Shown here piece by piece: positions 18,207 through 64,000 of a stretch of 64,000 nt of DNA. The DNA comes from Trichosphaerium sp. ATCC 40318 (lineage: Eukaryota > Protista > Tubulinea): the NCBI GenBank assembly GCA_038496445.1, contig JALMLS010000579.1, forward strand, positions 310,001 to 374,000. Direction: 5' to 3'. Made by a program: the position numbers and the translations under genes. How positions within the stretch are numbered: position 1 is the stretch's first letter; every line of letters begins with the position of its first letter. The notes beneath the pieces were generated by a model that was given only the letters and a program-made list of their open reading frames with translations, did no database searches and was not told the origin of the DNA.

Positions 18207-19300
18207 TTACGGAAAGGCCGCAATACGTTCTCCATTATACTCTATTAACTTGCCATTCTCATTCCAATCCTTGTTTGTCAATTGTGAGCCATGGCAGAAA
18301 TGACAGTGTGTCTTCAATTGGCCATTCTCATACCAGAGTAAAAAATCTCCTTCTAGTCGACCATGGTGACAATTACTCAGAATTTTCAATTGGCCACTTT
18401 CATACCACTTATTGCACTGTCCATGTTGTCTGCCATGGAAGTAATTTAACTGGAACATCAATTTGCCGTTTTTATACCACTGCTTGTATTCTCCTTCTTG
18501 TTTGCCATTACTGTAATTAATCTGGCATTTAAATTTACCGTTTTCATACCACTTCCTGAATTCGCCATCTTTTTTGTCATTGATGTAATTACATTGTGAC
18601 TTGAATTGGCCATTCTCATACCACTCCCTGCGTTCGCCATCTTCTTTGTCATTGATGTAATTACACTGTGACTTCAATTGACCATTCTCATGCCACTCTA
18701 AAAATTCTCCTTCACGTTTACCATTGATGTAATAAAACTGACTCTCCAATTCACCAGTACAATACCACTCCTTACATTCACCTTCTCTTTTACCACTGAT
18801 GTAATTACAATGGATTCTCAAAGACCCGTTTTTGTACCACTTGTTGTATTCTCCTTCTGGGTTGTCATTGATGAAATTAAACTTGCACTTCAATATACCC
18901 TTTTTGTACCACCTCCTGTATTCTCCTTCTCGTTTGCCATTTATGTAATTATACTGCCTCTTCAATCGACCGTTCATGTACCAATCCTTGAACTCTCCAT
19001 CTTTTTTACCATGTTTCCAACACTTTTGGTGTACAATACGGTTGTCGCTTCTACAAAGCCATTTTCCGTGCTTCTTCAACTTATAATCATACCTTGTGTT
19101 GATTGCTGCCTGTTTTGAAAGGAGAGGCCACTTTAAATACAGCGATGCGTCTAAATCGATAATATCAAGCTGAATCTCAACAGGAAGGTTTAGTAAATGG
19201 CTCTCTTCTGGTTTTCCCTATTAATTCGTTACATAAGCACTTTATCTTGTAATTAACCATGTAATACCTTTAATGCACTGGTAGTGGAATAAGCAAGCAT
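18207..19300 (-). CDS. F-box-like + MORN-variant (YwqK-type) repeat protein
   Basis: Short first exon at 19300, one intron, then LLNLPVEIQLDIIDLD...KWPLLSK and about ten 24-aa G(E/K)xxxWYxNGxL repeats. Confidence 0.85.
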
Positions 19301-20447: not shown

Positions 20448-22914
20448 ATGTTAACGTCTGTAACATCAATAACATTTTTCTTTTGCATCGTTTTTGCTTT
20501 AGAAGCGAATGGAGAGCACTTTGACATTGGTAAGTTAACGATGGTTTGAAGAGAAGCGTTCTTAGTCGGTTTGTAGGCGTTTTAGCTATTAGAGGAGAAG
20601 AATCGACTTATAATCAATGGAACGCGACAGCGGAGTACCTAGAGGATAACTCCATCGCGTTGTTCTCGGGTGTACAACATACTTTTTCTATTATTGCTTT
20701 GGGTGCCACAGAACTTGAGCAAGCGGTGATCGATGAAACACTGGACATGGTTTTAACAAATCCATCCCAGTATCTCCAACTAGAAGTAAGAAATAGCTGT
20801 TTTTTTGCAGAAATTTCAAGCAAAAATAGCCGAAAAATCAATTCCTTGAGATTCAGTATTAACTTTATTACAGGTAGCTAATTCAGTGTCTCGTTTTGCT
20901 ACACTTATAAACCTTCGCCAAGGGTTCCCCCTAACGACGTTTGGAGGCGTTATCTTGACTTTGAATAACAGAAATATTTCAACGTTTGAGGATATCCAAA
21001 AAGCTTCAATACATGCTGTAAGCTTAACAGGACTTGGAGCATATCGTATGCAGATAGGTTACTTGGAGGATAACGGCGTAGACATCGAGAACCTTAATGT
21101 ATCGTTTGTTGGGAACCAGAATACGATAACTAAGAATGTATTCGATGGTTTAGCTGATGTTGGGTTTATAAGAACAGATCAACTTGAACGATTTATCGTC
21201 AGTAACCCAGAATACGCAACACGAATCAACGAAGTTTCTGTTTTTAAAGAGATTGCAGCTGATTCCGAGTATCCTTTCAGAAGGACAACAAGGCTATACC
21301 CAGAGTGGCCAATATCAACAACCAGTAGAGCCCTTACAAAAATCGATGTTAGGTACGTTGTGAATCGAAGACGAAAGGCCATCTACTATTCTCAGTTTTT
21401 TCCTTCTTTGTTTTGATCTGAATTCAAATTTAAATAAAAGCAACTTGGTGGTGCTCTAGCTAACTCTTTTTATGTATTTAGGCAATTATCATCAGCATTC
21501 TTTTCTATTGAACAAAATACAACAGCTGCAATTCAAGGAGGATACCAACAATGGACTTCTCCTCTGAACTACAGAAATGTCTTTTTACTTCTTGATCAAC
21601 TCGGTGTGTTTGATAGCGAGCAAGAAAAATGTTTGAAGACGTGTAACCAAGAACATGGTGTATGTAATAATGTATCTGTATGCGTATGTAGTATTGGATG
21701 GGAGGGTCTCACATGTGATATTGTATCACCTAAAATAGAGGTACGCTGCAAACGTTCCAACTACTTTCGAAGAAAAAAAAAAGTGTTATGTAGTTTTCTC
21801 GTCTGACGCTTCTTTTAGAGATGGGTTCGATTTGATAATGCTGGAACATACTTAATTGTTATAGTAACTATCATACTTATAATTGTTATTCTATCTATGC
21901 TCATTTATATTATCACTATCCGTGAATCAAAAATGATTAAGAAAAAAGCTGGATTTTGGTTCAGTGTAATGTCTCTTGCTGGGTTTGTCATACTACTTGC
22001 AAGTATATTCTTTTGGCTTGGTAAACCCACTGATGTAAGTTGTGGCTTACGCGTATGGGCTATAAGTATTGGATTCACGGTGGTACGTAAAAGCGGATAA
22101 CATGTTTTTTGGATACGCAAACTTTTGTACTTACTTTAGTTTCTTAGGCTTATGTCGGTCCGCTTGTTAAGATTTGGCGTCTTTCCAGAATATTCAATAA
22201 TAATTCTTTAAAGATATTGACAATTAAGGACTCTTTCCTTGCTAAGATTGCTGTTGTCGTTACTCTAATTGAAATCATTTTCTGCATTATTTGGCAAGTT
22301 GTTGCTCCTTCAGAAGCAATAGTAGTCCAAGTCCCAGATAGGCACGTTTTTCTTACTTTATTATTATATGCCTTAAACTATGGTTTATTTGTAGTATTAA
22401 TACGGTTTCTAGTTTTGAGAAAGTGGATCATAAATGTAGCATCAATGAATACTTTGGATTTGTATCAGTGGCAATCAAAATGCTTCTGTTGATTATCTTC
22501 GGATGGCTTGCGTTTACTGTAAGGAAGGTAGCTTCAGATTTTAAAGCTGTAGATCAAAAATACGTAAACTTATCAATATACAACTCAATGGTCTTTTGTA
22601 CGTACAAGCACACATCCTTTTTGGACAATACGCCTTCAACTTTTTTCTCACTTTTTTCTTCAAAAAAAAGAGTCTTACATTTGTCTTTAGCTCTTCTGTT
22701 TGTTGCTCTACTTATCGCTATACCTGATAAATCATATGATCAAGAGTTTTATATTGTTTGCGCTGGTATTCTCATTCTTACAATCACGGCTGTTACTCCG
22801 CTTATGATTCCTACTCTCATTTTATCTCAAAACTATAATTCATCAATCACTATCGGATCAAAAAATGGCGATAGGAGTGCGCTATCTCATGGTGCTTCTA
22901 CCATTGATGTCTAA
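20448..22914 (+). CDS. class C (GABA-B/Grl-like) GPCR with PhnD/TtrS-like periplasmic-binding ectodomain and EGF repeat
   Basis: Signal peptide; I/GVLAIRGEESTYNQWNATAEYL, LTNPSQY, FGGVI, ADVGFIRTDQLE, TTRLYPEWP; EGF CNQEHGVC...CSIGWEGLTC; 7TM with CGLRVW, KIWRLSRIFNN, LAFTVRKVASDF. Confidence 0.85.
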
Positions 22915-34667: not shown

Positions 34668-35737
34668 TTACAAGCGATACACAGTGAAATGAACGTTTGT
34701 CTCCCAGAATGTTTCTGATACAATCTGTTTCACTTGTTGCCACATTAGACCATCTAATCCTGCTGCTATCAGTGGTATAGCCAACTAAACATAAGTTAAA
34801 ACAACAATGTTAAGAAAAAAACCAGTACCTTTGTAACATTATTTTCAACACAATGATCTCTCATTGCTTCCAGAGATGATCGTAATCCTGCATATGTAGG
34901 CTTCTGCCAGTACTTTGCTTTAGTTATTAGGTAGTATATGTATACTCCTTCATGCTCTAGGATAGCAACCTGACCTATCTTTGCTTGTTGTGCTTTGAGC
35001 TCGTCTACTTTTCCATATTTTTTTTTGAAAAGAACTGCAATTCCTTTACCCATTGCCAAGTCTACTGAGACGCAATGTGCCAGAGATGAACCAGGAGAGC
35101 ATGTGAATAAATCTCCTACATGCTTAGTATCAGTAGGGCTTATAAAGATGACAACTAACGCCGTACCGTTTCTCTCTTCGAAATGAAAAGCAAAATTTTC
35201 ACTTGGATTACTGAGGCTTTGACGCTCCCCTACAAGTTATTTGTTAAGGTGCCATAGAAAGAATAATAGCGTATTTAGTATACCTGGAAGTTGTGGCAAG
35301 TTGGCTGCGCCTCTGAACTTGTTTATCGTTGAAACAACTGAAAAGTCGAATGCTTTGAATTCGTCTTGAAGAACTTGCTACGAGTGGGTGTAAGAGTGCG
35401 TTCAGGTGGTACATGCATAAATTTGACAGGTAGAAGAAACGAAGAAATGTTTAAACGTTTAATAGTCTAGTTTATGCGCTAAAACGCTCAATAGTAAAAT
35501 ATTGACTAATATAACGTAAACACGCTTATTTTTATCGTTTAAAGCTAGTTTTCGTGTAACCACCCTTGGTACCTTTGTAATAGATGGAAACAACTCCACC
35601 AACTGTGTAATGCCTTGCTCTTTAAGCGTAGGCTGCCCTCGTCTGCCTTTGCCACGACCGCCTCCGCTGCCACCGCGACCTCTCCCTCGGCGTCCACGAC
35701 CTCTAAAACTACGTTTTCCGCCACCTGACTTACTCAT
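34668..35737 (-). CDS. OARD1: TARG1/OARD1-type macrodomain ADP-ribosyl hydrolase with N-terminal RGG tract and CUE-like segment
   Basis: GDLFTC...[55 protein letters not shown]; catalytic Lys and Asp positions present. Confidence 0.9.
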
Positions 35738-36353
35738 TACGCACTTGTCTAGTTTGTGTAAACTGTCAATTCTGTGAAATACGACCAAACTTTCTGCGTT
35801 TTTAACGAGAACTGGTAAAGTGAATGAGATCTGATGTCTGAAGGTTACATTTACCTGTAGTTTTCTGCTTGATTGTTTTGCTGACAGTCTTTTAACAACT
35901 TCCTTTTATCCGATAAGAACAATACTAATCGCAACAGTAATGCAATTGTTCTAATACTTGTTAAAGTATTGGTCACTACAGAAAGGCTGGAAGTGTTTTA
36001 TTGTGTTTAACCGTAATGTCGTACCATGCTATGCCTGTGGAGGGATACTGCAACTCTGTAGTTTATACCTAGAGAAGATGGGTGTTCGAAAACCTGTTAC
36101 CTCGCGATTTTTGATTACAAAGTATTTCGTTATAAAAAGTAACTATGGTGAGCACATATCTTGAACAGTTGAAGGACGTATGTAAAGAAAGTGTATCTAA
36201 CAGCAGGTGTAATAAACCTTAACTGTATGAGGCCTTACTAGTACCAACAAGTCACGTGCAGAACAGAATGCCTGAACCATGTGAAGAAAGTGGGGTGATG
36301 AAGAATAGGAGGATGGATTACGTGTGTTGGTAACACTGTTTATTGTATTTTTG

Positions 36354-39300
36354 TTAAACACCTGTGCCCCGAGTGTGTCTGCTTCTTGATTTTTTCCTTC
36401 TTTTTTGTTTTCTTTCCTTTTGTATGTTTGCTATACAGTACTCAAATATATCTTCAGTAGTTCTTTTACAATCTTTAAGTCCTCTGAATACTTCTCCAAC
36501 ACGAACATCGTTACTATCACAAAATTGCAAAAAGTTTGTTATTTGCTTTAAGGAAGAAAAAAGTAAGAACACACGTGTTGATTTTTTTCGTTGATTTAGT
36601 ACCGTGCATAATCCATCTTTATCTTTGAAAGTGCAATATATTAAATTCATTCTTGCATGTGAAGCGGCTATAATTTGCTCAATAGCTTTCAACTGCTTAT
36701 TACCACCATACCCGCCACAACCCTTTTCTGAGGATAAGAAAGTTCAAATTCTTTTTCTTATGTTTCTTCTCCTCGTACCCAGTTTCCAGTTGCAGTATCT
36801 ATATCTTTGAGTACAGTACTCCCGAGGATCTCTGTATTATTTCCGAACGCTGTATAAGCTGATATTAAGGGGTTAGAAGAAAAGTTGTTTGTTCAACATG
36901 TCTTACCCTTATTTATGTCGCGTTTAATTCTATCCACTCTGAACTCTTCAGAATTATTTCCTTTCTTATACCTTATCGCATCTAAAAGAAGAATGTGGCA
37001 ATCCAAGCAATTCATCTTATCATTGTATAGTGTATCATCAAGAAATTGACCTTCCAATATTCAGTAATTACCAAAAGAGTACAATCTTGCCTTTGAAAGT
37101 GAAGCTCTGTCCAAAACCATCATAGTGACTGAACCGCTCTGCACCGCTAATTACAATGGCCTAATAGCTATAAGTCAGAAGTGATGTGAGCGAATACAAA
37201 GGTAATACCTCATTTGGGTTTAAAGACTCACAAAGGAGGATGACCTACAAAAAAAATCACTAAGAACGGCTGAACAAATTGTGATCATCGTACAATGTAA
37301 CATTCTGGTTTAATGGCATAGGTGATTTCTTGTTGTGCGCATATCCCTGTAGGATCTAAAGAACACCCGCCAATTTCGCTATTACAAAACATTGATTGAA
37401 ACAAAGCTCTCGAATCTTCAATCTTTACATCATCTACTGCCTCAACTAAAATAGCTATAAGCGGCGTTTTGTACACAGGTGATTAAGTGAGGTACCGTGG
37501 CTTATTAGAAAACTAGAATCTGCCCATCGTATTTTAGTTTGAGTCACTTTTCTTTGGATTTTGATTTCACCTGCCAGTGAAACATTGTTGGCTTTCTTCA
37601 GTGCTCTATTTATTGTTAAATGTTTCCAATATCATACAGAACTTACAGCTCACGAAAATACTCAATTATGCAAAATAGTACTTGCTAATAGAGTGTTAAT
37701 GATACGAGGATGTACTAGTAATCTATGTACCTCCTTTGCAGAGCCTGGTTTTGCTGTGTACAACATTGAAAACGACCTCAGAAAAATTTAGTTTTGTGCT
37801 TTACTGTGCTTACTTTTTTACCATTGCTTTTTCCCTGGCTTACTTCTTACTGTACATAAAAAACAATGTGATAAAAGACAAGCTACCTAGAGAGATATTA
37901 GTATAGCAAGAAAAAGAAAGGAGGCAACAGAACACAAAATAAAAAGAAGGTAAAAAATCAAACCTGATCTCGGGTGTAAGAATAATCTGCGTTAACACCT
38001 TTACATAGCCTAGGTAGCTTTGATTCCTTGAATAAATTAGGAAGATCCAACGCTGATGAAAGTATAAAAGGCATAACAGTAGTGTAAAAATCTTTAAAGT
38101 GTTCACTCTTTGCCTTTTGCTGATTTCTAAAAAAGTTTGATTAGTCAACACTTTGTTATTTTTAGAATATCACGTGCGCAAAAAACTGAGGTTTGATTTC
38201 AGGATTGATTTTCTTGAACAGGTTTTGTAGGTCCTTGAGGTCTCTCACTCCTTTTCTAAGCCATCCTGATATCTTTGTCCAATATTCTTGGTTACAATGT
38301 GGTAGATAACAATAGTCTCTACTATCAATCTTTGGTTCTTTTTTCTTTTCAGGATTTCTACGCCTTTGTTTCATTACATGTAATCCCCATTTAACCTCAC
38401 GACTCCAAGAGACAACACCATATTCTATACGTTGGCTGATAATTTTCATGCTCTCTTCAACTAAACAAAAAAAACTGTTTTGAGTTTCTGCAAGGTCCAG
38501 CTGTCAAGTAACTTACTTGTATTAGAAAGCATAAAGCTTTGATCTCCTGAAAGAAACAAACGTAATTCCTTCGTTCTGTTGAGCGGTTCCTCCTTCAAAC
38601 AAAGTTGTTAAACAACGTTCTAAAACCTTTTTTTTGATAAATTAAGAGACAAAAACTAGAGTAGAACATACGGGGTGGTCTATTAGAGCTACTGCAAAGT
38701 TTGAAATCATACTAGCTTGATTTCTTAGCACACCATAGGCATCTAACTCGTGGTGTTAACAGAAACATTTAAGCAAAACGCTTTTCGTCGGACCTTGACA
38801 AAGAGATATAAATTGCTTCCATCTGTCGCTACTCAGCCTTTGTTTCATTTCTACATTCCAAACTTAGTTTTTTCGTGGTTTTTGTTAATAAATACCTGGA
38901 TGTATCGCAAGACATGGCGCATCAATAAATACAATTGATTTATTGAACGTATAGCCAAAATCAATATGGAACAAAGTGTAGTAGTCATCAGCTCCCTAGT
39001 AGCTCCAACCGTTAGTTTGCTTTAAATCCATACTGTAGTTATGTACGTGTATTAGTATATTGTCTTGGTGTCTATCTCTTATACCTAATAAGTATACTGC
39101 AATATAAGATCCCGCTGCGGAAGCTAAGAAATGAGTCATTTCCTTTTCATTCATTGAATCTAATTTATCCCAATTAAAATCGCTCAGAGGTTCACAGTTT
39201 TCTATAAACTCTACTATTCCAGTCGACTTACTATTATGAGAGTAAATAATATCAAAGCTGAAATATTTTAACGCACGTGTAAGGTAAAACCTTGTATAAC

Positions 39301-40515
39301 TTAATGAAAGGTTTTATTTTAAGTGATGAAGTTGCCCATAGTCGATTAAACACATGCATTAATGTAATAATAGCCAAATCGTTACGTAAGTCATCCCCTA
39401 CGTTTACGTCATATGAGAAAGTTGACTTAAATATAAACGTACCTATTTTGAAGATACCTAAAGACTTTTCTTCATGTGTCGATGAGCTAAAAATTATTGT
39501 TATTGTTTTCTCAGTTTTTTCTTCGAGCTGTACCTGAACTCTATTAGCTTTGGTTTACTTCCGCTTGTGAAAATCTTTTTAATAAGCATTCTGTCAGCAG
39601 TATGACCTACGTAGAGTAGTGAGCAAAGTCAAATAATTAAGATCTTGCAAGAACCTGCTAATGTCATTATTGGATTGTCTAGTTGGATAACCTTTCCTGC
39701 TTTGCCTTTTTTTAATGAGGATTCAACAGTTTTTTCTGCGTTTATGAGCGTATCGGATGTAACCCAACTTATAGATTCATTAAAGAACGCAAACCGTGAC
39801 TTAGCAAGCCTAAGAAAAAAATGAGAGTGAACCCTTATTGAAACAATAATACCAAAACGCTAAACTTCCAAGTGTTTTACTTGCGCTTATGCGATCCAAA
39901 AGTGCAAAGGTATCGTCACGTGGATAAATGTCACCAGATCTCTCCATCATGCGAGCAATAAGCGGTAAGAACCAGTACATTTGATTGTCTGTCATCAGCT
40001 ACATAAACAAATAACATTAATCTTTGCAAAAACAAGTCTTAAAGAACTCATTTAGGAATGTAACAAAATTATCCTTTCTAGCTGTGATAGCAACGCTTGG
40101 TAAATACCTTAAAGTCGCAAGGGCGAAAGGTGCATCCGTACTGATTTAAAGTGTGCCAAATGTCAATATCTTTTAACGGTTCGTGGCACGTGTTTTCAGG
40201 ACCTCTTGGGAACCCTGCTACGATTACGCCAGATGCAAGCCTTTTTAGAGCCTTTTGACGTTATGAATACGTTCGATAAGTGTTGTTTACTTACTTGTGA
40301 AGCCTCTAGGCGCAGTTCCTTGTTTTTTGAGTTTAACAAGTATAAAAGCGTTTGTATGGCTCTTGGAGCTTCTATATCACGTGTTTGATTTGTTCGTTCG
40401 CGTTCCTCTGTATCTGACACTTGTAGGGTTTCAAACTGGCTTGAAGAATCATCATCTATACGGACAGTTATTCTATTAAGCTACTAGGGAGGGTTAGCTC
40501 ACCAGACTTTTCCAT
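36354..40515 (-). CDS. PI3K-family kinase (helical + catalytic domain) fused to C-terminal PARG domain
   Basis: Kinase: FKI/GDDLRND, GIVEFI, LLGIRDRHQDNILI, LFHIDFGY. PARG: ALDLPNLF, Q/VACLLSHCFLCT, FCIIEYF, IED...FCNSEIGGC...AQQEITYAIKPEC, GAERFSHYDGFG, LLDAIRY, RDINK/AYTAF, ATGNW/GCGGYGG...LKAIEQIIAA. Confidence 0.85.
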
Positions 40516-40730
40516 ACGGCTCTGAATAGCTTAAATCCTTAAGTTTTTGGAATTGTTTTTTTTAAGGCCTTGTGGTTTAACTGAAGGAAAAAAGGGCAAT
40601 CTCATTTTTAGAGCTTAGAGGGAGAAGACTAAATTGATATCAAACAGGTTTTGACGCGTGATGTCACGATAATCGTCATGTACTTAGATACAATAAAACA
40701 CTTAACTACAACTCGTAACTCGCACTAGGG

Positions 40731-40897
40731 TTTCAGGGTGTGGTACTGTACACTTTTTAGACTGTAGTATCGTACACTTTTTAGGTTGTAGTACCGTACT
40801 CTTTTTAGGTTGTAGTACCGTACTCTTTTTAGGGTGTGGTACTGTACTCTTTTCAGGGTGTGGTACTGTACTCTTTTTAGGGTGTAGTACCGTACTC
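40731..40897. repeat. 24-bp minisatellite, 7 copies
   Basis: Consensus TTTTTAGGGTGT(A/G)GTAC(C/T)GTACTC, head to tail with no spacers. Confidence 0.9.
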
Positions 40898-42774
40898 TTT
40901 TTTTTACCAGTTATAACGTGCTTGACCATTACTTTACAAGCGGCCACTTGATGTAACTTGAATCTAGAGCGTAGAAATAATTTTCAGGTATGACATTTAG
41001 TTAGATAGGGGTAAGTTGAGGACAGTTTATTGTAATGATTTATTTAGGGTTTAGTGCTAGTTTTTGTTTACTTTTTAGGTGGTTGTATAGGACCAAAAAT
41101 GACAGACTTTTTGTACTTCAGTTTTAGTTCTGCATCATCACGTGATAGTGTACCTATAATATAAGAAAAGGTGCAACGTGTGTAAGTAAGTAAAGATGTT
41201 TATTCGGTTCAAAGTCAACATCGGTTCAAGACCAAATGTGACTATTACATACCACCTTTTTACAGCGTTCTTGTTTAGTCGTCTAGGTAGGGGGGAGTAC
41301 GTAACTCTTTTTTGTTCGTGTGAATACAAGATTCTTTTATTCAATCTACACGCGAAGCCCATGCGAGCGCCAGTGCCCTTGAGTCGTCTAGGTAAACCTT
41401 GAGCAGGTATCAAGGTTTGCCGAAAGTAGACATACCTGTTTGGTAGTTTGTATTGATCAATCTTTTGGTTTCACATTTTTTAACTAGGTAGGTGGGAGTA
41501 CATAACCATTTATTGAGGGTGTGGAATATTGCCAAATCCCGTCAACAAAAATCGCGTGTACTATTTATCACCTCCACCTATTAAGCTCTTGCGTTCCCAT
41601 GAGATGTGCTAGTTTCTTGTATGATTTTTGGTGCGATAAAAACACAATTTAGTACGTTTTGACCGTATTATTTTAAAAATAACCCATCACATCTACTTTT
41701 TGAGCTCAAACAATGCTGGAGGCTTTGGAAATGCTACATAGAGGCTACTCTATTAATGTGATAGCGGGCTGGGCACGTGGGTACGAGAGCGAACTTTTTT
41801 TTTTGTCTATGAACGTCGGAGTCATTTTTTAAGTTGTTTTTACGCAATCACAGGAGTAAATAAACCCAACACATAACGCGTCAAGTGTCAGCGAAATTTT
41901 GTATCTGTAAAAACGACAAACATGTTTGCAAACACAATAAATACATTGTATCTACTGTTCCCGAGCACTTTCAGTCCGATTCGTGGCCTTCCGAAACCCT
42001 AACCCTAGTAAAATTCAGATAAATACAGGGATTAGGCCTTAAATGGATTTGGCAATTAAGCCATTGCCTAAACTCGCACCTTTTCTTGACAGTTGTTTCG
42101 TATTCAGACGTAGCTTTCAATATAGTTTACGTACAATTAGATAATCAGGTAGCTTAACACCTTCTCGTCATAGTCTTCTTTCTTTACCCAACATAAAGCT
42201 AACCAGATTATAGCTTACTTCTGACAAAGCAAAGGATAGAAGCCTGATGGTGCTCGCCTTTGACTGAACCCTCATTAAGGTAAGGAGTCTAGAATCTTGA
42301 AAGGAAAGGAAGTTAGGGATATTTACCCAGGAGAACCCCGTTGACTGCTATAAGTCGCACTGTGAACAGAGTTAGTTCTCCTGTGTTTTATATTTGTTAT
42401 GTTACGCCAACAGAGAAATTTGATGGGAAGAGTGGGATAGAGATGGTTACGGGTGTGAATTTATTGGTGCGTCTAGCGAGGGCTTCCCATTTGACATATT
42501 TCATGGAGACATGTAGTCCATTGGAGTGGTTGTTCCATAGAATCTTGCTTACCGACTATGTTTGACTTTAAAAATCATCTACAAAATCTCACTATATAAC
42601 TTTCAATTGCTGTCGCATACACAAGTACACTCTTTTCAAGGGGCAACACTTCGCAGCTTTGGATACTACAGAAAGTGCGAAAATAGTCAGGCTTTTTGGG
42701 CACTATTTACCAATCTTGTGATTGTTTTTACGCACTCTAACTTATCTCTTACGCACTAATTTAGAAGTACCATT

Positions 42775-56571: not shown

Positions 56572-57597
56572 CTACATCAGATAGTAGTCAAGATAAATAT
56601 CCGTGCTTGAACCATTGTCAACAATTGATTTAACACAATCACGTGTAACATTTTGGCAACAACTAACATCAATAGCATGAACACCTTTCAGCGCTTTTAT
56701 ACCCTCATCAGTAATTGGAGTATGAGACAGGTCAATTGTATGAACACCAGCCAATGCTCTAACACCATTGTCAGTGACTGATGTGTAACCAAGACCAATT
56801 GTATGTACACCAGCCAATGCTTTAACACCCTCATCTGTAATTTGGGTATGAGACAAGTCAATTGTATGAACACCAGCCAATGCTTTAATGCCTTCATCTG
56901 TAATTTGGGTATAACCAAGACCAATTGTATGTACACCAGCCAATGCTTTAACACCCTCACCTGTAATTTGGGTACGAGACAAGTTAATTGTATGAACACC
57001 AGCCAACGCTTTAACACCTTCATCTGTAATATCACAGTCAGATAAGTTAATTGTATGTACACCAGCCAATGCTGTTACACCCTCATCAGTAATTTGGGTA
57101 CGAGACAGGTCAATTCTATGAACACCAGCCAACGCTTTAACACCTTCATCTGTAATCTGTGAAGCAAACGGAATGAACAGTGTTTTAATTCCAGAGAGCT
57201 GTTTAAGATGTTCATTAGTAACTGATGTTTTGGATCGAAAGCGTATCCAATTAACAACTTTGAAGTCAGTAAAGTCTATTTTTCTAAGCTTTTTATCAAT
57301 TTGAAGTGCGTATGCACCTTGTAGGTACTGTAAATGCTTTTGTTGAATAGGAAACATGATAGCAATCTTGTGTTCTTTGATGAGATGAGGCGCTTTTTTG
57401 AATAGTTTCCGTAGATTTCTTTTCTTCTTTAACATGATAAATTTCCTATTTGCATAGCCAAGGTGCTGTTTTGCTATGTTTGAAAGTAATTTGGATACAC
57501 GCACAACGGAATGCATGGATACTATTGAAATAAACTGTAGAACGTTAACAATGACTTCTACAGGTATCTCATCAAAGAATGAGCTGTTTTTGTTCAT
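56572..57597 (-). CDS. F-box + LRR repeat protein, intronless
   Basis: FDEIPVEVIVNVLQFI...VRVSK F-box; about eight near-identical 22-aa (66-bp) repeats ITDEGVKALAGVHTIDLS. Confidence 0.9.
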   Translation of the reverse strand: MNKNSSFFDEIPVEVIVNVLQFISIVSMHSVVRVSKLLSNIAKQHLGYANRKFIMLKKKRNLRKLFKKAPHLIKEHKIAIMFPIQQKHLQYLQGAYALQIDKKLRKIDFTDFKVVNWIRFRSKTSVTNEHLKQLSGIKTLFIPFASQITDEGVKALAGVHRIDLSRTQITDEGVTALAGVHTINLSDCDITDEGVKALAGVHTINLSRTQITGEGVKALAGVHTIGLGYTQITDEGIKALAGVHTIDLSHTQITDEGVKALAGVHTIGLGYTSVTDNGVRALAGVHTIDLSHTPITDEGIKALKGVHAIDVSCCQNVTRDCVKSIVDNGSSTDIYLDYYLM

Positions 57598-61036: not shown

Positions 61037-61975
61037 TTATCTTGTATTCACACCCTTACCATAAATACAGTGCCTACATAATTCGCCGTTTTCGTTCCAT
61101 TGCTTGTATTCACCATGTTTTACACCCTTTACATAATAACAACTTTCTCTTAACTGTCCATTTCTGTACCACAACGAATACTTTCCTTCCAGTTTGTGAT
61201 TCACATGACAATACTGTGCCCTTAGAACACCATTGTCGTGCCACTCGGTGGTATTTTCTTTTGGCTTATTAGTGTAATCTGTTACCATCTTTAATTGACC
61301 ATTGCCATGCCAGAACTTAACATCTTCTTCTATCTCACCATTGGCATAAATGACTTCCATCTCAAGTTGTCCATGGAAATACCATGTCTTTGCTTTACCA
61401 TCAAGCTTGCCATTAACTTTATGAAATATCCTCTCCATTTTTCCATTTTCAAACCAATACGTATTATCTCCTTCACATTCGCCATTAACATAGGAACACT
61501 TGTTACATAGTTGGCCACTGCCATGCCACATCATGTAATCTCCTTCTCGCTTATTGTTTGCATAATGACTGTGAACATATAATTTTCCATTCTCATACCA
61601 CTCCTTGTTTTCTCCCTCCTGTTTGCCATTGACAAAGTATGTTATCTGCTTCAATTGTCCATTTTCATGCAAACGTTTAAACTCTCCATGATACAGACCA
61701 TGTTTAAAATATGCTTGAAGAACAACAATACTTTGGTTTTTTGAGTTTACACTGACATTCTTTTGTTTGATCCACTTTCCATGTTTGTTTAATTCAACAT
61801 CAAACCTCGTTGTCATTGCTGTGTATTTTGACAACAGAGGCCACTTTTCATACACCTCAATGTCCATATCAATGATTTCAAGATGTAACTCAACAGGAAT
61901 GCCTAACAACTCATATTTTTGTTAGTGAGGTGTAAAAATACATATTTAGAAGAGTACTTGTTGCGATGACGTCAT
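61037..61975 (-). CDS. F-box-like + MORN-variant repeat protein (paralog of 18207-19300)
   Basis: MTSSQQ / intron / LLGIPVELHLEIIDMD...KWPLLSK...KHGKW, then WYxNGxL repeats. Confidence 0.85.
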
Positions 61976-63307: not shown

Positions 63308-64000
63308 TTATGAATCATCTGAACTTACATCTTCTACTTTAATCTCTGGTGTTTCTTCTTCAGTATTTGTATTAATAAGATCAGCTTGAGACATATTGAA
63401 TTTCCTCTTCAGTACAGCTATCTGCATGTACAAGTGTTGTATTGCATCGGGTATATTTTTTGGTTCATGACTTGCAGCGGACTCTATTTGTAGCTGCTTT
63501 TTCACTTCTTCTTTTATCATTTCACTGATTTTTGCACGTGATAAAGGAAGACCTGATGATTCCCTTTCAAAAAGCTTATTGATTTGAGTTAATATTTTTT
63601 TACGATGACCAACTGCTGTTATACCCATATCTCTCAGATCAGAACTTGTAAGGCTCTTAAATAACATTAGTAGGTATGTAAATACAAAAAGATTCAAGAA
63701 AAAAGAGAAGGTAGGTAGAAAATACTCACGGCAGTGTTTCGCCATCGATTTTGTGTTCAGTGAAATTCGAAACGAACTCGCCAAGATCTTTGTTCGCAAG
63801 CCATGCAGATACCTCGTACATACCCCATGCTCTAGGACCGACTTTTTCAACCTTTTCACTCTCCTCTTCACCGCTTATAGCACCATCAATATTCTTTGAT
63901 ATCTCTTTACGAAGAGCTGAAATCTCAGATAACAAACTTTCGTTACCTGACGCTCCCATTGAATCAGAAGGTACATCAAGTGACGCATCACTCTGTTCTA
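63308..64000 (-). CDS. SAM-domain protein, 5' part outside window
   Basis: WGMYEVSAWL...FTEHKIDGETLP/SLTSSDLRDMGITAVGHRKKIL. Confidence 0.85.

Follow-up and report, generated by a model that had tools for sequence, protein, structure and literature searches.

The DNA considered here is a stretch of 64,000 nucleotides from Trichosphaerium sp. ATCC 40318 (contig JALMLS010000579.1, positions 310,001 to 374,000), which is referred to as the window. A gene of 26 exons runs on its minus strand from an ATG at 40515 to a stop codon at 36354-36356 and encodes, with 0 frame breaks, a predicted protein of 946 amino acids (aa), in which a kinase of the phosphatidylinositol 3-kinase (PI3K) type is followed by a fold of the poly(ADP-ribose) (PAR) glycohydrolase (PARG) type. 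Both ends are exactly those given in a preliminary description of this DNA. The fused gene is almost certainly real at the DNA level, and its expression as a single continuous mRNA and protein is probable.

Two runs, X1 and X2, neither of which is recorded as RNA, were aligned to positions 35400-41200; the two runs contain 0.13 and 0.27 of the sampled words. Run X2 is cDNA (the contig ends carry the SMART template-switch adaptor) with more than 99% identity to the window; run X1 comes from a related strain (approximately 95-99% identity), and its contigs are partly spliced. Spliced cDNA contigs back 16 of the 25 introns. Fifteen minus-strand splice joints were listed from both runs, and the sixteenth (intron 37821-37777) was deduced from one contig with a loose end of four letters, CAAT, which equals the end of exon 16. 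Once the joints were shifted to the splice signals, 15 of the 16 RNA-backed introns were GT-AG. The intron at 37051-37090 is 40 bases long, shows GC-AG borders (GCAAGA...GGAAG) and is spliced out in contigs from X1 and X2. For the stretch without cDNA, nine further GT-AG introns of 45-79 bases were predicted, whose length, GC content and splice signals resemble those of the confirmed introns. The window has a GC content of about 37% and short introns, in keeping with the published draft genome of the marine amoeba Trichosphaerium, which shows 37.69% GC and a mean intron length of 75 bases (PMC10521059).

Three other readings of the frame were rejected. Apparent breaks near 39830, 38757 and 37830, which would have pointed to a pseudogene or to homopolymer indels, proved to be misplaced introns when compared with the cDNA joints and when the introns that keep the frame were enumerated; they are replaced by the introns 39852-39810, 38793-38743 (predicted) and 37821-37777. 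A 33-base intron was discarded on the basis of the same joints and enumeration. A ciliate-type genetic code was also discarded, because all in-frame TAA and TAG codons fall within GT-AG introns of 40-109 bases. A second copy of the gene model was not found within the window by tblastn.

The cDNA 5' end at 40601 carries the template-switch adaptor and one extra G and looks capped. An in-frame TAA (40533-40531) lies six codons upstream of the ATG, and a divergent plus-strand transcript begins at 40931. Because of these three boundaries, additional domains at the 5' side are excluded. A 24-base unit, repeated in tandem about eight times (40731-40926), occupies most of the 330-base gap between 40601 (minus strand) and 40931 (plus strand), and this array may be a repeat-built bidirectional promoter. 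The features of the gene are as follows.

36354-40601, minus strand, transcription unit with 26 exons, cDNA 5' end at about 40601.
40503-40515, minus strand, exon 1 (aa 1-5), downstream intron 40502-40456 RNA-backed.
40295-40455, minus strand, exon 2 (aa 5-58), acidic and serine-rich start, introns on both sides RNA-backed.
40108-40251, minus strand, exon 3 (aa 59-106), introns on both sides RNA-backed.
39853-39998, minus strand, exon 4 (aa 107-155), N-terminal helical region, both introns RNA-backed, no Pfam or PDB match.
39655-39809, minus strand, exon 5 (aa 155-207), upstream intron RNA-backed, downstream intron 39654-39607 predicted.
39534-39606, minus strand, exon 6 (aa 207-231), FTSGSKP, downstream intron RNA-backed.
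39443-39486, minus strand, exon 7 (aa 231-246), ATP lysine K244 in GIFKIG, introns on both sides RNA-backed.
39277-39397, minus strand, exon 8 (aa 246-286), DDLRND and the next helix, PF00454 positions 10-46.
39047-39230, minus strand, exon 9 (aa 286-347), catalytic loop GIRDRHQDN, PF00454 match.
38896-38995, minus strand, exon 10 (aa 348-381), HIDFGY and short activation loop, both introns predicted.
38794-38850, minus strand, exon 11 (aa 381-400), predicted, intron 38793-38743 picked among frame-keeping options.
38672-38742, minus strand, exon 12 (aa 400-423), predicted.
38517-38592, minus strand, exon 13 (aa 424-449), predicted, donor with the consensus GTAAGT.
38174-38460, minus strand, exon 14, the fusion exon (aa 449-544), 95 in-frame codons without a stop, both boundaries predicted.
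37964-38119, minus strand, exon 15 (aa 545-596), start of PARG_cat_N, PF20811 positions 4-47.
37822-37886, minus strand, exon 16 (aa 597-618), PF20811 positions 50-66, downstream intron 37821-37777 from a cDNA contig end.
37776-37731, 37684-37647, 37605-37496 and 37445-37294, minus strand, exons 17-20 (aa 618-733), all introns in the block RNA-backed.
37327-37374, minus strand, counterpart of the PARG catalytic loop, IGGCSLDPTGICAQQE (aa 707-722), from the alignment to Tetrahymena PARG 4EPP.
37244-37209, 37160-37091, 37050-36907, 36858-36779 and 36722-36603, minus strand, exons 21-25 (aa 734-883), all introns RNA-backed.
36699-36787, minus strand, diphosphate-binding loop GNWGCGGYGGN (aa 841-851), split by intron 36778-36723.
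36354-36545, minus strand, exon 26 (aa 884-946 and stop), upstream intron RNA-backed.
36419-36375, minus strand, polybasic tail (aa 926-940) in exon 26, from the gene model.

All Pfam, structure and database queries were made with single exons, not with the spliced whole protein. Exon 9 alone matched PF00454 (PI3_PI4_kinase) with 31.2 bits (cut-off 27.1; E 2.7e-07) at profile positions 126-156, and exon 8 is collinear on the same profile (positions 10-46). The best PDB matches of exon 9 were PI3K-C2alpha and the beta, delta and gamma forms of p110; Vps34 ranked below them. For exon 8 the top PDB matches were all p110-gamma at the homologous position, each of them weak singly, and ESM Atlas returned only the generic answer PI3_PI4_kinase for exon 9. 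The three catalytic motifs named in the preliminary description (DDLR, DRHQDN and DFG) are all present in the gene model. The ATP lysine K244 lies in the segment IFKIGDDLRND (aa 242-252), and DRHQDN was located at aa 338-343 (39076-39059) and DFG at aa 359-361 (38962-38954); these catalytic residues were aligned with PI3K-C2alpha and p110. FTSGSKP in exon 6 is the counterpart of the PI3K phosphate-binding loop.

The kinase half thus shares with class I and class II PI3Ks (p110 beta, delta and gamma; PI3K-C2alpha, 7BI4) the PI3_PI4_kinase domain and the motifs IFK-x-GDDLR-x-D, DRHxxN and DFG, and it presumably ends where the natural C-terminus of p110 falls. It differs from them in three respects. 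First, the adaptor-binding (ABD), Ras-binding (RBD) and C2 domains are absent, because the kinase domain is preceded by no more than about 225 residues, and the cDNA 5' end and the upstream stop set the limit of the N-terminus. Second, the activation loop past DFG (YTFNKSIVFIDAPCLAIHPE) is short and not basic, with a single lysine, whereas the loops of class I and class II enzymes possess basic boxes, which serve phosphorylated inositide substrates. Third, the C-terminal helix runs into another domain and not to the protein end. By eye, the N-terminal region bears a possible resemblance to the consensus of the PI3Ka helical domain. The kinase half is predicted to be a minimal form of PI3K, consisting of a helical region and the kinase domain, and is probably an active lipid kinase. 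If it acts on lipids at all, the short activation loop with its single lysine suggests plain phosphatidylinositol as the substrate, and not phosphatidylinositol 4,5-bisphosphate (PI(4,5)P2).

The DFG segment LFHIDFGYTFNKSIV in exon 10 (38897-38995) resembles the FNIP repeat motif. A kinship of this exon to FNIP-repeat proteins (proteins of Cafeteria roenbergensis virus; PDB 6NYR and 7ZAL; summed matches) was rejected as a chance similarity, in which FGYTFNKSI mimics the repeat motif.

In the second half of the protein, PF20811 (PARG_cat_N) was matched by exon 15 (profile positions 4-47; E 5e-04) and exon 16 (50-66), and PF05028 (PARG_cat_C) by exons 20 (18-62), 22 (76-98), 23 (103-145) and 25 (169-204), with about 104 bits in sum. 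Exon 25 alone reached 38.9 bits against PF05028 (cut-off 26.3) and matched human, mouse and rat PARG with an E-value of 7e-06. The exon matches follow the order PF00454, PF20811, PF05028 along the gene, which bears out, exon by exon, the earlier assignment to PI3_PI4_kinase and PARG. By these profile matches, the PARG half is complete as a fold, with a helical and a macro part, and is of the canonical type. With canonical PARGs (human 4A0D and 4B1G, mouse 4FC2, Tetrahymena 4EPP) it shares the full PARG_cat_N and PARG_cat_C in this order and the diphosphate loop GNWGCG-x-(F/Y)GG; the loop GNWGCGGYGGN is conserved in comparison to human GNWGCGAFGGD.

The differences from canonical PARGs are the catalytic signature, the position C-terminal to a kinase and the additional polybasic tail. 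The signature of the family is defined as GGG-X6-8-QEE (PMC4245714; PMC4287526). In the alignment of IGGCSLDPTGICAQQE to IGGGILGNGLVQEE of Tetrahymena PARG (4EPP), the amoeba protein shows GGC-X9-QQE: the third glycine is changed to cysteine, two extra residues extend the spacing to 9, and the first glutamate is changed to glutamine, while the second glutamate is kept. Hence, the complete PARG of the preliminary description holds for the fold, the profile order and the diphosphate loop, but not for the catalytic signature, and its assumption that the PARG part degrades PAR cannot be carried over to this protein.

Mouse PARG binds the 2''-OH through E748 and has its key residue in E749; the E748Q variant shows residual activity only (PMC3897571). 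In Arabidopsis PARG1, the change of the third glycine in G264L abolishes activity, and PARG2, with a natural GGL form, is inactive (PMC4287526). Because the published mutants at the third glycine and the first glutamate lose all or most of their activity, the PARG half is expected to hydrolyse PAR weakly or not at all, and its most likely role is the binding of ADP-ribose or PAR. Arabidopsis PARG2 (GGL-X7-QEE) is similar as a canonical-type paralogue that has lost the third glycine, and it has a biological role in spite of its lack of detectable PAR hydrolase activity (PMC4287526). It differs as a stand-alone protein with both glutamates kept, whereas the loop of the amoeba protein is longer and its first glutamate is changed.

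It is rather unlikely that the PARG part is instead an active eraser, which either is taken to phosphoinositide-rich membranes by the kinase or the polybasic stretches or works side by side with the kinase. The kept second glutamate of QEE, which is the general acid in mouse PARG, the intact diphosphate loop and most fold landmarks, the residual activity of mouse E748Q (PMC3897571) and the conservation of the variant loop between strains would be in agreement with an eraser. The signature, however, departs from the family rule in three respects together (cysteine at the third glycine, spacing of 9, glutamine at the first glutamate), and a change of the third glycine alone is sufficient to kill the activity of AtPARG1 (PMC4287526).

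Both halves meet in the fusion exon (38460-38174), which reads in frame from EESMKII... through WGLHVMKQ and the linker RRRNPEKKKEPK into YCYLPHCNQEYWTKISGWL... and up to PQFFAH without a stop. The single stop-free exon of the preliminary description was therefore found, with the exception of its limit at about 38162: the exon ends at 38174, and the last 12 bases belong to the intron. The final kinase helices close with WSREVKWGLHVMKQ at about aa 480 (38366), a basic linker of about 14 residues occupies aa 479-492 (38371-38330), and the N-terminal region of PARG extends from about aa 498 (38314; YCYLPHC...EYWTKISGWL...KKIN). The Pfam match to PARG_cat_N starts one exon later, in exon 15. The two parts of the exon are provisionally named kinase C-terminal helix and PARG helical start because of their position between the flanking domain matches and because of a comparison with human p110-alpha and human PARG.

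An assembly error that joined two genes inside 38174-38460 is very improbable. Although the join is left uncovered by runs X1 and X2, it lies inside a 287-base exon that is in frame with the exons on either side, no repeat or composition break was found at this exon, and the two halves are co-oriented and show the same intron style.

Over both halves, run X1 differs from the window at 9 positions, comprising 7 synonymous differences, 1 conservative replacement (A651V) and 1 intronic difference. The 3 differences in exon 9 are all synonymous and affect third codon positions, and the protein sequence of the variant PARG loop is unchanged in X1. The excess of 7 synonymous changes over 1 conservative change points to purifying selection on both halves, in a small sample. 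This also touches on the idea that the fusion arose recently by accident, through the heavy domain shuffling of this lineage, and is neutral or decaying, without a function of its own. The degenerate PARG loop and the fact that the same join was found in no relative would fit such an accident; it is nevertheless quite improbable, since all 26 exons share one open frame, expression and splicing of the gene are seen in cDNA, the kinase has lost none of its catalytic residues and the strain differences are mostly synonymous.

Relatives of the fusion exon were found neither in a library of 1.84 billion representatives, nor in a word-indexed set of 5.8 billion (within its length limits), nor in metagenome contigs or viral contigs, and ESM Atlas gave no usable match for this exon. 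One match in the 1.84-billion library, P0001, was rejected as spurious; it is a tandem-repeat protein that matched through basic repeats. The blank search is weak evidence, because these collections seem to be without the proteins of this amoeba. Full-text literature searches gave no description of a PI3K-PARG pairing either, in agreement with the preliminary description, which knew of no such fusion. Additional domains on PARGs have been reported, namely PBZ in Adineta vaga, a Nab2 zinc finger in Entamoeba dispar, and G8, TM and Ribosomal_L32e (Perina et al. 2014, PMC4245714). These multi-domain PARGs of protists and invertebrates likewise combine a canonical PARG fold with an unrelated module, but the partners on this list include neither kinases nor enzymes that modify lipids. 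Judged from the predicted protein, the fusion is a new architecture assembled from known domains.

Beside the fusion gene, several other features were noted in the window. An exon of a TARG1/OARD1 orthologue (34799-35059, minus strand) matched human O-acetyl-ADP-ribose deacetylase 1 with an E-value of 6e-25 over 76 aligned residues; it gave no Pfam match at E-values up to 1. This orthologue is co-oriented with the fusion gene and is located 1.3 kb downstream of its stop. Between both genes, a small open reading frame (ORF; 35459-35788, minus strand) encodes a long run rich in arginine and glycine (RGG) and is highly expressed, with a cDNA contig depth of about 65 in comparison to about 6 for the fusion gene. 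On the plus strand, an ORF at 20886-21416 gave a match (E 4e-12) to PF12974, a phosphonate-binding domain of the bacterial periplasm. The rest of the stretch is eukaryotic; the ORF may stem from lateral transfer or belong to a larger receptor. Furthermore, two ORFs of 290 residues rich in MORN_2 repeats (18207-19079 and 61037-61909, minus strand; E 4e-37 and 6e-27), an ORF rich in LRR_6 (56572-57597) and an ORF with a SAM domain (63308-63871) were identified.

Taken as a whole, the explanation that we favor has about an even chance of being correct: the locus would be one real, expressed gene, the product of which combines a kinase with an ADP-ribose-binding PARG fold serving as a targeting or regulatory module. 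The protein would consist of three parts: a helical region that takes up the first 225 residues or so, the catalytic domain of PI3K type and, behind a basic linker, a full PARG fold.

Several observations weigh against this explanation. Beside the restriction of all queries to single exons, the single N-terminal exons gave no Pfam or PDB match to the PI3Ka helical domain. The passage from the kinase helix to the PARG helical start, as it was first described, is in frame and stop-free, but sequence comparison of the fusion exon with Pfam and with solved structures gave no match, and both of its splice sites are predicted. An AlphaFold model of this exon alone was uninformative (pLDDT 47.6) and was not used. 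The cDNA contigs of either run leave 37830-39320 uncovered, and the joins between exons 13, 14 and 15 rest on the DNA. A further cDNA 5' end that carries the adaptor, at about 37826, could be an internal start, giving rise to a product with the macro fold only, from near M622. Some hydrolase activity of the PARG half is possible, as its key second glutamate is kept. Finally, no relative with the same join was found, and conservation therefore gives no backing to a function of the fusion.

The gap in cDNA coverage bears in particular on the alternative that the halves are mostly separate products, either because an internal promoter allows translation to start at M453 or M478, or by internal polyadenylation or retention of intron 14. 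Neither side of the cDNA reaches into 37830-39320; the 5' contig ends at about 39322 (by depth arithmetic), and the additional 5' end at about 37826 could mark a second transcript. Retention of intron 14 would close the frame after a complete kinase and yield a protein of 547 residues that comprises the entire kinase plus a short tail, whereas retention of intron 13 would cut the kinase at residue 466. Against separate products, no stop codon closes the kinase frame ahead of the PARG sequence, and translation of a complete kinase C-terminus necessarily continues into PARG-coding sequence. The end at about 37826 lies inside exon 16, in the PARG helical domain, and is devoid of the extra G carried by the two probable cap sites, which fits a truncated cDNA. 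The contig end at 39322 lies just short of an A-rich run (AAAATAAAA, 39320-39312) and fits internal oligo-dT priming. In addition, the cDNA depth is alike on both covered halves (5.6-6.9), which lends weak support to one mRNA. Separate products are therefore improbable.

With regard to the mechanism within the favored explanation, the PARG fold would have a targeting or allosteric role: it would bring the kinase to ADP-ribosylated proteins or switch it there. The C-terminal helix of known PI3Ks gates membrane binding and catalysis; since the PARG fold is attached at this helix, it is plausible that ligand binding could reach the kinase through the attachment. This mechanism, in which the PARG half is both reader and regulator, is put forward only tentatively. 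A coupling of ADP-ribosylation to phosphoinositide synthesis, as proposed in the preliminary description, is a fair inference from the architecture alone, but the phagosome or anti-pathogen setting added there found no support.

A more far-reaching possibility, which we consider a long shot, is that the PARG-fold fusions of this amoeba, which has a heavy exchange of genes with giant viruses, form a modular system for sensing ADP-ribose, akin to innate immunity, in which the binding of ADP-ribosylated targets by the rewritten PARG fold switches on local synthesis of phosphatidylinositol 3-phosphate (PI3P). The PI3P would be made around these targets and might, for example, start autophagy or phagosome maturation. 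In a bolder variant, the ADP-ribose bound in the PARG fold would itself be the substrate of the PI3K-fold domain, which would phosphorylate it on a ribose hydroxyl.

Gene fusions rank among the best natural hints of crosstalk between pathways, and we know of no direct enzymatic link between ADP-ribosylation and phosphoinositide signalling. The weight of the present case is limited by its origin from a single poorly studied protist and by the predicted join of the mRNA. As a single protein with a PI3K-type kinase and a PARG fold, the fusion would represent a concrete, testable link between ADP-ribosylation and phosphoinositide signalling, and it would be a further case in which the PARG fold seems to be reused as a binding or regulatory module and not as an eraser.

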